NCBI RefSeq assembly: GCF_000315625.1
Contig: NW_005434596.1
Span: forward strand, 88,615-152,614
DNA: 64,000 nucleotides
Source of the DNA: Guillardia theta CCMP2712
Lineage: Eukaryota; Protista; Cryptophyta
Direction: 5' to 3'
Both the position numbers and the translations under genes were made by a program. The notes under the pieces are model-generated. The model searched no databases, was not told the DNA's origin, and was given only the letters and a program-made list of their open reading frames with translations. Of this stretch, positions 5,568 through 13,858 are shown piece after piece. Every line of letters begins with the position of its first letter. Position 1 is the stretch's first letter.

Positions 5568-5826
5568 CCTGACAGTCCACCTCCCCCCGCAGACCCATGG
5601 GGTACAAATGGAAGCGACGGAGGGGTGGGTAGACCCATCGTGTGGTCCTGCACCTCTGGGTGGGGTGGTGATGGTTGAAGGGGTACTTTCGCCTTGGAAA
5701 AGAAGGGTTATTAAGGAGTATCCCCGTCCTGGTCGGAAACCTGCGGGGTCTGGTGAATGGGTGGGGTGGGGTGGTTTTAGAGGTGGAAGAATGCAGGCAG
5801 ACTCGCGGCATGTGTTTGTGCTGCGG

Positions 5827-8800
5827 ATGGCGGGAGCGGCGGTGGACGAGAAGGACGAGAGCTCGACGACTACACATCACATCTTAAAGTTCCATCAGAT
5901 GGATGTGAAGGTCCGATCTTTCCCTCCTCCTCCTCCTCCTCCTCTCCCTTCTCGTCCTCTTCCTCGTTCTCTTTAATTTTCGTACCCGGATCTTTCTGGC
6001 CCTCAGCGCCAATGCTCTTCCTTGCGCGATGAGGATGCTGAGATGTGCTGGTTTGATCAGAGCTTGGAGAGCTCGCATGGTCAAGCCTGGCTGTTCAGGA
6101 GAGATCCAGTGCAGGAACTTGCGGACGACAAGAAGAAGAAGAAGAGTTTCATATCGGAGATGCTGTTTGAAAACCGAGTGGTACTTGATTCCTGAACTTT
6201 CAACTGGTCATGGCTGATGGATGAAAATTACAGAGAAGAGAATGGAAACGAAACTGGATGATCGCAGACAGTGAGGACAAGGATTTCGAACATGCTTTCG
6301 AGGCGAGGCAGGAGGCGGATAAGGTGATTTGGGCTGGTTCGACAATTAGACGCTCATCTCTCCGCAGCGATCTTCTCTCAACCAAATCATCAACGCACAA
6401 CTCAACTGCGTTGAGGTGAAGCCGACCAAGGAGTGGTCAACACCAGACAACATTCGCGTGTACTGTCGACAATGGCAGTGGTCGCATGACTGTAATGACC
6501 TGCCTGACAGGAAGGACCTGAACGAGAGGTTCCGAAGGCTCTACTTGTAGCTCAGACGTTCTATGGCGGCACATGTTTGGTCTGATTGTTGCTGTTTGCA
6601 CAGACAATGCAAGACTTTGCTCATCGGACCGGGCACCGACGTGATGTCGAAGAAAGTTCTTTACAGGAAGAAGAACGAGGATGGCAAGGGCTCGGACGGC
6701 TTCGAGTCATTGGAAGTCATGGTCCGTGTGCCCACAAGTAGAGTCCTTGCTGTCTGCGATGTTGCCTGTGCTAATCTCAACCTGCGATGGTCAGAGCACT
6801 TGAAGGTTCTGGACCAGTTGAAGAAGGATGAAGACGACCTAATCAGGATCCTCAAGGTCGGAGAACCTCCTTGCAGTCAGCCAGTGCGCCTCACCTCAAC
6901 ATCTTGCAGGATGAGATGAAGAATGGCTTCGTGGAGGTGCATGGCAACACCTGCTCGTACAAGGTGGGGCTGCGCCGGGGTTGGAAGAGTTTGCGAGAGG
7001 TGACTTGCACTGTCAGATCGAAGAGGAGGGGAAGAAGCAGTACTGTTACTTCTGGCTCGAGGGAGGTGAAGAAAGTGAGGGAAGGAGGCTGGGAAAGTCA
7101 GAAGTTCCGCAGGAGAGACGGTCGATGGGACGAAGGAGCTCCTTGTCAGGCCGGTGAACGGAGACTGGTGAGAGTGCTGCACGTCGTTACGAAGTTCTTG
7201 GCGAGGAGAAGGAAACCGAGGAGGAAGAGAGTAGGAGGAACAAGTTGGTGAAAGAAGAACGAGAGTAGGAGGAAGAGAGGGGAGGAGGAAGAGAGGGGAG
7301 GGAGGAAGAGACGGGAGGGGAAGGAGGAAGAGGTGGGAAGGAGGGAGTGAAGTCAGTGCAGGTGGAACGTGAGAAAGGACGCGACAAGGAGAGGAGTCAA
7401 GGTGGACTCCACAGAAACCAAAGAGACGAACTCTCGCGGAAACAAGGTTGACCCCTCCTTTCCTCTGCTTCACCAGTGGACCCCTGGTTACCCCAGGAAA
7501 CTGTGGAATCTCTCTTCAAGACAGGCAACGCATTGAGGGATCGACTGATGATCAAGGAACCCAGAGGGTCGTCCGGCCGTTGGGGATGTTTGACGTGTTG
7601 GAGCAGACGGAGATGGCGAAGGAGGTTCAAGGCTTCAGACAAGGTGAGGGAGGATGTGGTTGCTTCTGTCTACTCCTCCTCACATCTGACCAGATCACGG
7701 CAACAACAAGAAGACCATCAAGCGCGAGCCTGGTTATGGCAGTGAAGACGTGAGTCGTTTCCTCTCTCTCTTGGGATCCCGCCGGCCCGGCCCGGCCCTC
7801 CGGCCTTCAACTCAGTCTCTTCGTAGGCTCTTAGGCAGCAGTGGCGAGAAGAAAGTCACGAGGCCGACGATGACATGGACTGCCAGTGAGACTTTGACAA
7901 GCAGCCTGTCAAACTTGACACCCTGACCGGCAGACAATGTGGAGACATCGATGACGACGACTATGACATGGCGATGGCGGCAGCAGGCGAGCAGCTGAGA
8001 TACAGCCGAGCTTTCACTGACAGATGCTGACAGGAGACGATCTCTCGTTGAACCCCGAGTATCATCTCAAGCCCGACCCCGGTCAGCTGAGTTTGCGGTG
8101 ATTTCTCAGCTGAAATGTTGACTCTGGGGCAGATGAGGATGTACTGGATGAGCTTGTGAAGCAGCTCAGCGACGAGTCGGAGGAAGAGGAGGAGAACGAG
8201 TTGGTACGAGGGAGGAGGGAGGAGGAGGACGAGGAGGAGGTGGCTCGACTTGATGACCTTGCCCTTGACAGGATGACACTGGGAAGAGGATGGATGGCTT
8301 GCTGAAGGGAAAGAAAATGGTCAGAGATGAAACGAGCAGCCGCTAAACTCTGCGATGCTTGACAGGACATGACAGGACGCGGAGCCGGAAGAAACGAAGG
8401 CGGAGAGCAACAAGGCAGACTCTACGCCTCCTCCAAAACCAACCAAGCAGAAGGTGATGTCTTCCTCCTCCTGCTTGTACTCGTGCACCCTAACCTGCTC
8501 GTGCTCCTCTTGGCCCTCCTACCCCTTACAACTTATTCTCAATCCTCTTCTTCACCGATCTTCCTGACTTTGTTTCCTTCTCTCTCAACAGGCGAACGAG
8601 GGAGTGATAAAGATCAAGAAGGAGGCTGATGCTAACGTGAGCTCTCCTCCTCTCTTGTCCTCCTCCGACCCGCCCCCCTGCAGAAAGACAAGGAGAAGGC
8701 CCCGGAGAAGACGGGCTTGACCCTCAAGATCCGCCAGGACCTCGGCAAGCGCGCTGCTTCCTCCGCTCCCGACTCGGACGCGGCTGCCGGAGCCAAAAGG

Positions 8801-9792
8801 TCAGTCGCCTCCTCGTCTTGCCTGCAGCTCACCGCTCCTCAGGCCGAAGGTCGCCGCCGCCGCTGCCTCATCTGCTCCTGCAGCAGCTCCTGCAGCAGCA
8901 GCTGCTGCTGCAGGTGGAGGAGGGGCGTTCAAGTACACAGAGGATCAGGTAAGAGCTACGAAGGTACTCATTGTTGCTGACGTCACTGACCCCTTTCCCC
9001 TTGTCAGATCCGAGAGACGATCGACAAGGATACGACCATGACGACTAAGAAACTTGTGGCCTCCTCTCCCTGCTTCTTCTTCTCGCTGCTCAGCTCTCCC
9101 CCACCTGATTTGCTCTCTCCCTCTCCCTCTCCCTCTCCCTCTCCCTCTCCCTCTCCCTCTCCCTCTCCCTCTCCCTCTCCCTCTCCCTCTCCCTCTCCCT
9201 CTCCCTCTCCCTCTCCCTGTCCTCTCTTTGTCCTCTCCCTCTCCCTCTCTGCTCACACTCGTCCCCCCCCCTCCCCTTCTTCTAACCTCCTCCCTCATGT
9301 TTTTCTCTCTCAGATCGCGGTATACGATGTCAAGGGCATGTCAAGAGAGGATCAGGTCCCAGCTGAATTTTCCCTTTCACCCCAGCTGACATCCAAGCTG
9401 CAGCAACGCTTCATGAACATTGTGAAGAAAGTTTGTCTCAAGACGCAGAAAGTGGTGAGTATGAGAGATGGAGGAAGAGGGGAGGAGGGGAGGAAGGAAT
9501 TGTGAGATTTGAGGTCGAGGAGTATGGTTGAATGTCGTGTTTGAGTCGGAGGACAAAGAAAGGAGAGCAACAGGATGTGGGAAAGGGAAGCGGGGCGGGA
9601 GACTGAGGGGACAGGTGGAATGAAGAATGGAGGAAGAGAGAAGAGGAGATGAGAGAAGAGTGAAGGAGGAGAGTAGAGGAGGAGAGTGAAGCGAGGATGA
9701 GAGCAGGGCCGGCTCGCTACTTGCTAAAGTTGGCGCAGGTGGAGGACGGGCCTTACAAGGGCCAGCAGATCATTCGAACCAAACAAAAGTAG
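5827..9792 (+). CDS. Probable transcription initiation factor IIF alpha subunit (RAP74/Tfg1-like), many exons
   Basis: N-terminal HHILKFH, long charged and acidic middle, and C-terminal [17 protein letters not shown]...[13 protein letters not shown] resembling the RAP74 winged helix. Exon chain only partly resolved. Confidence 0.45.
9117..9250. repeat. (CTCTCC)n intronic microsatellite
   Basis: Directly visible. Confidence 0.9.
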
Positions 9793-10094: not shown

Positions 10095-10341
10095 TCATCT
10101 CGATCTCCACGCATGCCATCGTTCATCTTCAAGCATCAGTTCAAGTTCGCCGCTGTGCAGCAGTGCCAGCGTCTCGTCGCACCTGCCGACATGTCAGCTA
10201 GCATCTCCTCCTGCACCCACCCACCCGCCGATGAATCTTCCTTTCACAAACACTTGCGGGCTTGTTCGATGCCCTGAGACAAATCATCATCGTACAATTC
10301 CTCCTCCTCCTCCTCCTCCTCCTCCTCCTCCTCCTCCTCCT

Positions 10342-10375
<34 letters not shown>

Positions 10376-12020
10376 TTCCCAACCCCCAAAATCTCTCTCC
10401 TCCTCCTCCTCCTCCTCCCATCCCCCAAAATCTCTCTCCTCCTCCTCCTCCTCCTCCTTCTCTGCCTTCCTCCTCAATCACTACCAGAAATCTTGACCTT
10501 CCCCTCTCTACTTCTCTGCCTGCCACGCCCCTCGTACACTCGCCCCTCCTCATCTGCACCACCTGTTGTTTGCGCGATAACCACCTGCATTCTCAGACCG
10601 TCCTCCACCTAACGGCCATCAACGTTAACATCATCAACATCAACATCAACAACGTCAACACCATCTGCTCTCCTCCTTGCTCCAACTCACCTCGTCGCAC
10701 TCTATGCACTTGAAGGGAATGTTTGCCATCTTCAGCGCCCGTTTCAGCTTGATACAGAAGCTGCAGTAGGACTTGCTGAAAATCTGGAGGAGGACGAGGA
10801 GGAGGAGCCAGGAGGGCGAGGAGGAGGAAAAGGAGGAGACGAAGGAGGAAGATGGCGAGAGGGAGGAAGAGGAGGAGGAGTCAGCAGCTCGACTACCAGC
10901 ACACCGGCAGCATGCTCACCATGAGCGCGTCCTCCCTCGACGAGGATCCGCCCAGGTGGCGGTCCAGCTGGCGACAGATCTCCTCCCTGTCCATCTCACT
11001 GTGCAAGTGGCCGAAGCGCGAGACGACCTCGTCCCAGTCGTCTCCGTTGAGGAACTTGCACATATGATCGTTACAGATCTGGCGCAGCTTCGGCTCCTGG
11101 TCGGACTCGTTGGAGATCCATGCAAGGAAGTCCACCTCCGACGCTAGCTGCTCCACAGCTAGCGGGACCCTCCGCAGAGAGTCAAGGATGTCCTTCTCAG
11201 GCACGACCCTCCCCGTCAGCCTCCCCCTCAGCTTCGCCCTCTCCAGCACCGAGCCCATGGAGGCATACACGTACAGGATGGCGATGCGGTACTCAGGGTG
11301 TCTCTTCTTGATATCGTTGAACACTCTCGTGTACCACTCCGCATCCCTCAGGCTCCCGTCCACCCAGATGTGCTTCCTTTGCCGCAGCGCTGCCTCCTGT
11401 GCAATCTCCACACACAGCCCGCACTCCTTGTGCGTTAGCCGCCCCGCCATGCTCGGGTCACGCTCGATGTACCCCTGCCATTCCGGCAGGCGCTCCCGGA
11501 AGGAGTCCGGATCTATCTGGACGATGTCGGGGAGCGGGAACAGCCCCTGCTCCGACATCCAGTGAATCGTCCTACTCTTACCAGCTCCCATCGCCCCTGC
11601 CGTGTAGACTATCCAGGGGTGCTGCCGGTTGGGCGTGCCCCCTCCTATCACGTCGTGGATCAAAATGTCCTGCAGCAGCTGCCTGGACTCCACGTAGTTC
11701 CCGTGCCATTCAAAGTCCCGCGTGCTCCGGATGTCGCTGAAGGGGCCCCAGACCTCGTGGCTATCCAGGTGATAGTTGCTGCAGGTGGGAAGAGAGAAGT
11801 TGTAGGAGGGAGGCACTTGAAAGTGGAAAGGAGTCAGCTTCTCCCTTGACTTCCAGATGCTGAAGAACTTGCAGTGCCAGTGAGGATCGGCCAGCGAGCC
11901 ATGGCCGCAGTGGGGCCCCTGGTGAACGGTAGGACCTGCCATGGGGTTTGCGCGGGAGTTTCTAAGGAGGACCAAGTTGATGGCGCAGAGGTTCAACAAC
12001 CTCTTCGCTGAAACGCGAAT
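10095..12020 (-). CDS. Zeta-toxin-family P-loop kinase fused to a C-terminal glutaredoxin domain; 5' end unresolved
   Basis: Main exon (to 10920) has PWIVYTAGAMGAGKS, IDPDSFR and IWVDGSLR. In-frame GT-AG exons 10691-10783, 10563-10608, 10225-10273 and 10095-10182 give LMIFSKSYCSFC...QTTGHRTSPQVFVKGRFIGGCDET...SR*. Confidence 0.85.
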
Positions 12021-12811: not shown

Positions 12812-13858
12812 ATGGTGGTGAGCGCGTATGAGGAGGAGAGGATGGCGAGGATGGCGGAGAATAAGAAGATCATGATGAGCTTGGGGATAGAGGACAACAT
12901 GATCCCTCTCGATCCTCTCCAGAGCAGGAGGAGGGAGAAGAAGAGTTCGTCTGTGGCTGAAGGAGGAGGACATTGCGATCTCTCAGGCGAGTCTACGACC
13001 GAGGCGGGGAACAAGAGGCTGCCCGCGAAGAAGAAGTTGAAGCGAGAGGAAGACTGGGATATGGAGCCTCTAAGACGTTCTACAAGGCTCAGGACCCGAG
13101 GGGAACTTGTGAGCCTGCCTGATGACTGGAAGGAAGGGACCTTCAGGGGTGACGTCAGCGATGATGAACTGGCAACAGATCACAAGAGACAGAGGTCAAC
13201 GGGCAAGAGAGCTGTCTACGTGAAAAGAGAGAACGGAGGCGATGAACATGATGACGACGTGAAGGAGGTGACGCCGTCGATCGTTGAGGACAGGAAACCT
13301 GCCTCCTCGGACTCTTCGAGGAATCTCCATGCTGACCTTCACTTGCTAGAGCCCGTGGTCGGCCGGAGAGTTCCGGGGGGACATGTGAAGGCTGGAGTGA
13401 TGGAATTCGTGAGCCCGAAATGTCGACCCAAGTTCAGCAAGTATGTAGGAGTGCAAGAATGGAAGAACGCCATCTTCCTGATGATGAACATCGCCTACGG
13501 GAACAGCTATGCAAACACCTTCATCGACATGGACAGCAGGATGCAAGTCACTTACTACCTGAGTGAGAAGACCAAGCCTGAAGCTCCGATCATCCCGAAA
13601 CTCGTCAAGTTCTCCAAGTACAACGGTGAAGCCGACAAGGGGCAGCCCTTCTCTGTACATCTCTTCTGCCGGCCCGCCCCGGAGTCAGTGAAGCTTGCCA
13701 ATCTCGACAACTCGGACTATGTTTATTGCGGGCGACTGAAGTTCCTGAAGAATGACGTGAGCAGATGCCCCATAGAGTTCTTGTTTGAGCTTGTAGACTA
13801 TGCTGCCCTCAAGAAGAGTCCAGATTTCCAAGCACTTCTTGATTTGCTCAAGGAATAG
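12812..13858 (+). CDS. Nuclear protein with SAYExxR...ENxxxxxSLGI N-terminal motif and C-terminal DUF3427-like (SRA/PUA-like) domain
   Basis: Single-exon ORF with KKKLKR and RRSTRLR basic motifs; C-terminal GVQEWKNAIFLMMN..Y.N.F...VHLFCR...YVYCGRL...PIEFLFEL pattern. Confidence 0.6.
   Translation: MVVSAYEEERMARMAENKKIMMSLGIEDNMIPLDPLQSRRREKKSSSVAEGGGHCDLSGESTTEAGNKRLPAKKKLKREEDWDMEPLRRSTRLRTRGELVSLPDDWKEGTFRGDVSDDELATDHKRQRSTGKRAVYVKRENGGDEHDDDVKEVTPSIVEDRKPASSDSSRNLHADLHLLEPVVGRRVPGGHVKAGVMEFVSPKCRPKFSKYVGVQEWKNAIFLMMNIAYGNSYANTFIDMDSRMQVTYYLSEKTKPEAPIIPKLVKFSKYNGEADKGQPFSVHLFCRPAPESVKLANLDNSDYVYCGRLKFLKNDVSRCPIEFLFELVDYAALKKSPDFQALLDLLKE

Follow-up and report, generated by a model that had tools for sequence, protein, structure and literature searches.

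Within the 64,000-nucleotide stretch of DNA analysed here, from the cryptophyte alga Guillardia theta CCMP2712 (contig NW_005434596.1, positions 88,615 to 152,614; hereafter the window, to whose positions all coordinates below refer), sequence comparison confirms a predicted five-exon nuclear gene on the minus strand, at 11942-10095, which joins a zeta-type kinase to a complete class-I glutaredoxin in one protein of 432 amino acids. We favour, at a probability of roughly 0.6, a reading of the whole in which the product would be a single two-domain enzyme, a zeta-fold small-molecule kinase whose glutaredoxin serves as an input module tied to the glutathione redox state. The locus is also in GenBank, where scaffold JH993042.1, 89269-110556, is the exact reverse complement of window 655-21942 (0 mismatches over the 21,288 bases compared).

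The kinase lies in a minus-strand open reading frame, 10893-11999, that is closed by a TAG codon. A first-pass annotation, made from the letters of the window and a list of open reading frames, had noted the stop at 10893, had chosen a GTGAGC donor at 10919 and had continued the frame through four small exons with matching intron phases, and each of these elements is borne out. Exon 1 (10920-11942) comprises 341 codons from an ATG at 11942, which is also the start codon of the GenBank model; its last codon is a methionine codon (10922-10920), followed directly by the GTGAGC donor that starts at 10919. From the N-terminus on, its product comprises a disordered stretch, a conserved subdomain, the Zeta_toxin-fold kinase and, at its end, helix 1 of the glutaredoxin with the beginning of strand 1. 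Retention of intron 1 (10784-10919) leads the frame to the stop at 10893; its removal, which is also part of the GenBank model, leads into exon 2 (10691-10783), whose 31 codons supply strand 1, the C-S-F-C active site (10765-10754) and helix 2. Exon 3 (10563-10608, 46 nucleotides) encodes the middle of the glutaredoxin, exon 4 (10225-10273, 49 nucleotides) carries the T-S-P motif with its cis-proline (10265-10257) together with strands 3 and 4, and exon 5 (10095-10182, 88 nucleotides including a TGA stop) completes the G-G-C-D motif and adds the last helix and a short tail. The four small exons translate as the first-pass annotation had quoted them, and the five together amount to 1299 nucleotides, or 432 codons plus the stop; the G. 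theta gene is intact and needed no repair of its sequence.

All four introns begin with GT and end with AG, and their phases are 0, 0, 1 and 2. Intron 1 (136 nucleotides) runs from GTGAGC to AG and contains a GGA/TCC microsatellite, intron 2 (10609-10690, 82 nucleotides) runs from GTGAGT to AG and contains a tandem repeat of 15 nucleotides, and intron 3 (10274-10562, 289 nucleotides) contains TCC/GCC microsatellites. The earlier description of the exons as buried among microsatellite introns thus holds for these three, most of whose length is made up of tandem repeats; intron 4 (10183-10224, 42 nucleotides) is not among them.

The splice model was searched exon by exon, with a natural full-length homologue from Hemiselmis (P0006) standing in for the whole protein. 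A glutaredoxin profile of the family, built from the glutaredoxin parts of 47 natural relatives, was run against every open piece in the three minus-strand frames between 9900 and 11000, and it recovered exons 2 to 5 in order, at profile positions 7-38, 39-54, 53-71 and 67-89, with E-values of 2.8e-11, 0.6, 3.5e-8 and 2e-3, respectively; the value of 0.6 for exon 3 is still the best match for positions 39-54. Searches by tblastn with whole relatives returned the same exon pieces in the same order with zero insertions or deletions at the junctions, the residues of the Hemiselmis homologue that were matched being 346-363, 377-392 and 391-408. Exon 2 alone passes the Pfam Glutaredoxin cut-off, and the profile and tblastn tile the pieces in order, so that the exon pieces represent more than chance. 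Transcript-derived relatives carry both domains in a single open reading frame, among them Hemiselmis andersenii (MMETSP), several Trinity open reading frames, Diplonema papillatum, Ectocarpus, Pylaiella and Polarella. The glutaredoxin exons might have been thought to possess a first exon of their own; this is implausible because the fold begins in exon 1, where the helix before strand 1 and positions 1-2 of Pfam Glutaredoxin are encoded upstream of the donor after 10920.

In the public annotation, GenBank/JGI model GUITHDRAFT_76626 (P0001; 383 amino acids), exon 1 is spliced to exon 2, and the Pfam matches precomputed for it are Zeta_toxin and, weakly, Glutaredoxin; the fusion, which the first-pass annotation had called hidden, was thus only half hidden, and what is missing there is exons 3-5. 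The model reads past the donor at 10690 and stops within intron 2 at 10655, so that its last 11 residues are intron 2 sequence (10655-10690, minus strand) and its glutaredoxin is partial, cut after helix 2. This 3' end is an annotation error and not a mutation, and exons 3-5 correct it, turning a partial glutaredoxin into a whole domain and 383 into 432 amino acids. The convergent neighbour gene (5791-9606, plus strand) ends roughly 490 bases from exon 5; this interval is free of annotation, and the extension therefore conflicts with no annotated feature.

Scanned exon by exon, the two Pfam domains that had been expected of a spliced fusion were found, Zeta_toxin in exon 1 and Glutaredoxin in exon 2. 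Pfam Zeta_toxin (PF06414) covers residues 103-271 (11130-11636, minus strand) with an E-value of 3.1e-23 and 82.7 bits against a cut-off of 22.3, and this score, the profile tiling and the single-frame relatives uphold the proposal of one gene for a zeta-toxin-like kinase fused to a glutaredoxin. The Walker A motif (P-loop) is GAMGAGKS (G116-S123; 11574-11597). A D-P-D motif (D144, D146; 11505-11513) has both aspartates invariant in 83 of 83 sequences, and a D-G-S-L-R motif (D195-R199; 11346-11360) aligns with the E-G-T-L-R segment of PezT. Aligned with PezT (2p5t_B), K122 corresponds to Lys45 and D146 to Asp66. Across two alignments, of 70 and 83 relatives, G116, G121, K122, D144, D146, P153 and E154 are invariant wherever the residue is present, and so are E173, E179, D195, G196, R235, R239 and R245; G119 and S197 are invariant in one of the two and nearly so in the other.

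The part of the protein before the kinase core is only about 100 residues long, with predicted disorder at 1-33, and a Pfam scan of this part upstream of the P-loop gave no match. It includes a subdomain specific to the family (residues 72-92; 11667-11729, minus strand) in which R72, D76, H80, R87, Q91 and D92 are invariant among 70 relatives, and which may contribute to the substrate pocket. An AlphaFold2 model of the exon 1 product, built with 69 relatives, has a mean predicted local distance difference test score (pLDDT) of 87.5, with only residues 1-33 disordered. In a Foldseek search of the PDB, this model matched PezT first (2P5T, E=1.6e-9), followed by zeta (1GVN, 3Q8X) and AvrRxo1 (4Z8Q/T/U/V), and the top 12 ranks were all occupied by chains of PezT, zeta or AvrRxo1. 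The next fold, PFKFB and then polynucleotide kinases, had a score some 50-fold worse than that of the weakest chain in this group and some 5000-fold worse than that of PezT; dephospho-CoA kinase and PSTK also belong to this second tier. With its score, its fold, its Walker A lysine and its catalytic aspartate, the predicted kinase is a member of the Pfam Zeta_toxin P-loop superfamily, and because it retains the full set of family-invariant residues on a zeta/PezT fold, it is most likely an active phosphotransferase and not the decayed relic of a toxin.

The glutaredoxin can be assigned with similar means. Exon 2 by itself scores 32.0 bits against Pfam Glutaredoxin (PF00462; cut-off 22.9, E=1.5e-7), and the Hemiselmis homologue scores 57.4 bits against the same family and 82.2 bits against the NCBIfam equivalog GRX_euk, whose cut-off is 87.25. 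The class-I motifs of the G. theta protein are C-S-F-C in exon 2, T-S-P in exon 4 and G-G-C-D across the junction of exons 4 and 5, and these columns are conserved in the relatives. The Hemiselmis domain matched plant class-I glutaredoxins and human Grx2 at E-values of about 5e-19, and its best fold matches were dimeric human Grx2, holo poplar GrxC1 and holo Arabidopsis GrxC5. The domain had originally been presented as a complete dithiol glutaredoxin; complete it is, with all three motifs in place, and it is the emphasis on a dithiol that does not carry over to the family. Among the fused members, the first active-site cysteine is kept in 98%, whereas the fourth position of the site is cysteine in only 59% and otherwise serine, threonine or glycine; judged from these proportions, the conserved chemistry is that of the nucleophilic cysteine and not of a dithiol. 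Position 2 of the site is mostly serine, and proline occurs there in only 1 of about 43 fused members. Glutaredoxins with a proline-free active site of this type (Grx2, GrxC1, GrxC5) can ligate a [2Fe-2S] cluster together with glutathione. By this feature of the active site and by its neighbours Grx2, GrxC1 and GrxC5, the glutaredoxin of the family is a candidate for [2Fe-2S]/glutathione binding.

Relatives of the kinase were collected as the 120 best matches of a homologue search, as a further set of 87 representatives, and by an exhaustive HMMER search of 1.84 billion cluster representatives (50% identity), which returned 3066 relatives at E<=1e-3, 641 of them at E<=1e-30. Both domains are present in 41 of the best 120 matches, from cryptophytes, diplonemids, brown algae and dinoflagellates, so that the architecture is not unique to G. 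theta but widespread in public protein sets. Some of these fused entries are titled 'Glutaredoxin-C4' or 'glutaredoxin/predicted ABC-type ATPase' in the databases. The named matches are all from protists (cryptophytes, diplonemids, brown algae, diatoms, dinoflagellates, haptophytes and one pelagophyte), and motif scans detected the signature motifs of the family in 0 of 185,579 prokaryotic species genomes, and scans of viral contigs were equally negative. One protein, P0149, was considered as a plant-like member of the family and rejected, since it is a diatom tandem-kinase protein. Diatoms (Cylindrotheca, Seminavis, Nitzschia, Epithemia and others) possess a large subfamily of about 650 residues with two Zeta_toxin-type matches (P0149, P0121, P0245-P0355).

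The 87 further representatives include 16 with a pair of EF-hands, 4 with a glutaredoxin and 1 with a DEP domain. The EF-hand pairs stand either C- or N-terminal to the kinase core, and fusions to DEP and DUF218 also occur (P0114, P0117, P0118, P0176, P0122, P0019). As far as domain composition tells, a single type of kinase core has been paired with a variety of signalling modules, and the presence of EF-hands or DEP in sister proteins in place of the glutaredoxin suggests that these are interchangeable sensor modules.

On the favoured reading, the N-terminal approximately 310 residues, which have the zeta/PezT/AvrRxo1 fold of P-loop phosphotransferases, most likely use ATP to phosphorylate a hydroxyl of a nucleotide-type small molecule. 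Our best guess for this substrate is NAD+, by analogy with the plant kinase NADKc and with AvrRxo1, because both characterised zeta-fold kinases that are active inside eukaryotic cells use NAD. The C-terminal approximately 100 residues form a class-I glutaredoxin, with a nucleophilic cysteine, glutathione-binding motifs and a proline-free C-S-[FY]-[CS] site, and could serve as an input module on the same chain that couples the output of the kinase to the glutathione redox state or to iron-sulphur (Fe-S) status. Coupling might proceed through glutathionylation of the active-site cysteine of the glutaredoxin. Alternatively, two chains might dimerise around an Fe-S cluster ligated by glutathione, in the manner of human Grx2 and poplar GrxC1.

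Several observations weigh against this reading. The splicing of the G. theta gene is deduced from homology and splice signals, and the likeness of the kinase to NADKc, including the resemblance of the Walker A motifs suggested by the first-pass annotation, is an analogy; no plant protein was found among the matches of two homologue searches, in the exhaustive HMMER search or among the names of 20 representatives. The kinase sequence is remote from every solved or characterised protein, PezT being reached at E=0.13 in a phmmer search of the PDB and the NCBIfam PezT equivalog NF041574 giving 21.4 bits against a cut-off of 470. Many relatives have no glutaredoxin, although some of these are fragments or truncated models. 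The model of the full-length Hemiselmis protein (pLDDT 87.2) has a predicted template modelling score (pTM) of 0.84, a value that only hints at a defined arrangement of the two domains. Finally, the family alignment contained no kinase-domain cysteine that is conserved specifically in the glutaredoxin-fused members, which speaks against a disulfide switch conserved within the chain. The routes of coupling that are left are glutathionylation of the glutaredoxin cysteine, cluster-dependent dimerisation or action on a partner.

A C-G-L-C pair directly after the invariant Glu173 (11412-11423, minus strand) occurs in 7 of 46 glutaredoxin-fused relatives and in 2 of 250 others. The enrichment probably reflects one lineage and is not general to the fusion, and the pair was rejected as the redox target of glutaredoxin-fused kinases on account of this limitation.

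The gene structure itself has a competing account, namely that the public annotation is right, that the gene ends in intron 2 or at 10893, and that the glutaredoxin-like pieces downstream are unspliced, decayed remnants. The GenBank/JGI model does stop at 10655, its protein cluster consists of one member, and the protein collections contain no transcript-derived G. theta protein with a full glutaredoxin. Against these points, the four pieces are open, phase-compatible and bordered by GT and AG, they keep the T-x-P and G-G-x-D motifs, and they tile the family profile without gaps; a tail of 11 residues read from an intron and ended by a stop is, moreover, a typical artefact of gene prediction, and a glutaredoxin part ending after helix 2 would not fold. 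We consider this account hardly credible. If the protein is taken as complete, the glutaredoxin may yet be a catalytic or maintenance partner rather than a sensor, the fusion then uniting two steps of one pathway instead of providing regulation; it could keep a thiol reduced, either in the kinase or in the kinase's substrate, or it could deglutathionylate a partner protein recruited by the kinase. Such use has precedents in thioredoxin-glutathione reductase and in the peroxiredoxin-glutaredoxin hybrid HI0572, which employ a glutaredoxin as an electron relay and are both among the sequence matches, and the near invariance of the nucleophilic cysteine is in keeping with it. Phosphoryl transfer, on the other hand, needs no reductant, no cysteine of the kinase domain is conserved together with the glutaredoxin, and the appended position in sister proteins is occupied by clear signalling modules (EF-hand, DEP), which favours regulation. 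We regard a partner role as unlikely, if deserving of serious consideration, and prefer the reading of the glutaredoxin as a redox input to the kinase.

The nature of the kinase could also be construed differently. PezT and zeta are its nearest folds, and its P-loop, D-x-D and G-[ST]-L-R segments align with PezT, so the protein might be a domesticated UDP-sugar kinase toxin of the zeta/PezT type in which the glutaredoxin acts as a built-in inhibitor, much as the antitoxin domain does in E. coli EzeT, a precedent for control of a zeta domain by a fused domain (PMC10532202). A toxin origin sits poorly with the score far under the PezT equivalog cut-off, with the lack of an antitoxin-like neighbour at the locus, with the absence of the family signature motifs from the prokaryotic genomes scanned, and with the conservation of an extra N-terminal subdomain with its six invariant residues; a large, conserved, eukaryote-wide family, as represented by the 641 relatives at the stricter threshold, suits a housekeeping or signalling role better than that of a selfish toxin, and we judge domestication very unlikely. 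Less readily set aside, though in our estimate still distinctly unlikely, is a substrate unrelated to NAD or UDP-sugars, such as another nucleotide cofactor, a polynucleotide end or a sugar phosphate, in which case the analogy with NADKc would be misleading. The kinase shares only 12-19% of its residues with zeta, PezT and AvrRxo1, nothing among the Pfam matches corresponds to the invariant N-terminal subdomain, and the second tier of fold matches consists of PFKFB, polynucleotide kinase, dephospho-CoA kinase and PSTK. These folds are, however, separated from the zeta, PezT and AvrRxo1 chains by the margins given above, and NADKc and AvrRxo1, as zeta-fold kinases acting inside eukaryotic cells, both act on NAD. 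We retain the reading of a zeta-fold small-molecule kinase under glutaredoxin control, with NAD+ as the best guess for its substrate.

The combination of one kinase core with a glutaredoxin here and with EF-hands elsewhere points to a family of metabolite kinases gated by signals, with members in cryptophytes, stramenopiles, dinoflagellates, haptophytes and diplonemids. Antioxidant defence and biosynthesis both depend on the supply of NADP(H), and in plants the zeta-type kinase NADKc couples Ca2+ signals to the production of NADP+. Should NAD+ prove to be the substrate, the fusion would physically link the glutathione redox state to the size of the NADP pool in ecologically important protists. 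A wider proposal, which we offer tentatively and hold to be possible but doubtful, is that the family consists of NADKc-type NAD+ kinases with interchangeable sensors on the same chain, where glutaredoxin would report on glutathione or Fe-S, EF-hands on Ca2+, and DEP would be a further module. Were this true, the thiol redox state of marine protists would feed back directly on their NADP(H) supply, by a control circuit that has not yet been described. A practical outcome is that the truncated gene model in the public G. theta annotation can be corrected.

The surroundings of the gene are summarized here for completeness. The flanking genes at 12812-13858 (plus strand, 348 residues) and 5791-9606 (plus strand, 593 residues) have no Pfam family on record, and genes farther from the locus carry HK (PF02110) and URO-D (PF01208) domains. 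No adjacent epsilon/PezA antitoxin gene was seen among the annotated neighbours, two of which carry the HK and URO-D domains and the others no recorded domain. An open reading frame with a long run of Ser-Pro dipeptides (9038-9505, plus strand) lies within the span of the convergent gene at 5791-9606, and ARAGORN and Rfam both place a tRNA-Thr with anticodon TGT at 433-505 on the minus strand.

The first-pass annotation knew of no described protein with this architecture, and full-text searches likewise found no paper on a fusion of zeta kinase and glutaredoxin or on this kinase family; sequence databases, by contrast, contain the fusion in plenty, about a third of the best 120 matches having it. 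In print, the zeta-domain proteins of eukaryotes under discussion are NADKc of plants and a protein of Leishmania with a different architecture. Among known systems, the zeta and PezT toxins of bacterial toxin-antitoxin systems (1GVN, 3Q8X, 2P5T) are the best fold matches (E-values of 1.6e-9 to 7e-8, template-modelling (TM) scores of 0.57-0.64 on the target), and they can be aligned with the G. theta kinase at the P-loop, the catalytic aspartate and the G-[ST]-L-R segment. They differ from it in sequence, with the low identity noted above and a score that does not make it a PezT equivalog, and in context, as the G. theta gene is eukaryotic, nuclear and intron-bearing and its product has an extra N-terminal subdomain and a fused glutaredoxin. 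The Xanthomonas protein AvrRxo1 (4Z8Q/T/U/V), a kinase of the zeta fold with NAD as its substrate (bioRxiv 10.1101/521658), gives the longest structural alignment, with 295-303 columns and TM scores of 0.51-0.52 on the query; it is nonetheless a secreted bacterial effector with its own chaperone/antitoxin, shares 13-14% identity, and has neither a glutaredoxin nor the motifs shared by the family.

E. coli EzeT is likewise a zeta-type kinase restrained by a domain on the same chain (PMC10532202), but it is bacterial, acts on UDP-GlcNAc, and its regulatory domain is N-terminal and antitoxin-like and not a redox protein. For the other half of the fusion, the class-I glutaredoxins capable of binding [2Fe-2S] (human Grx2, 2HT9; poplar GrxC1, 2E7P; Arabidopsis GrxC5, 3RHC) are the top matches in both sequence and fold, and they have in common with the family a proline-free site of the C-[SG]-Y-C type and the T-x-P and G-G motifs; they are free-standing proteins of about 100 residues, whereas in the family the domain forms the C-terminal part of a kinase, and its second cysteine is replaced in about 40% of members. 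A precedent in terms of regulation is Arabidopsis NADKc (At1g04280), a zeta-domain kinase specific for NAD+ that is switched on by Ca2+/calmodulin (bioRxiv 10.1101/521658). The N-terminal domain of NADKc, some 200 residues long, contains a calmodulin-binding site and a membrane anchor, and the protein lacks a glutaredoxin, in contrast to the short N-terminal subdomain and C-terminal glutaredoxin of the G. theta protein. What the two share is a eukaryotic zeta-fold P-loop kinase placed under a signalling input, and the EF-hand-fused relatives of the G. theta protein, which would also sense Ca2+, would be the same-chain counterpart of control by calmodulin.

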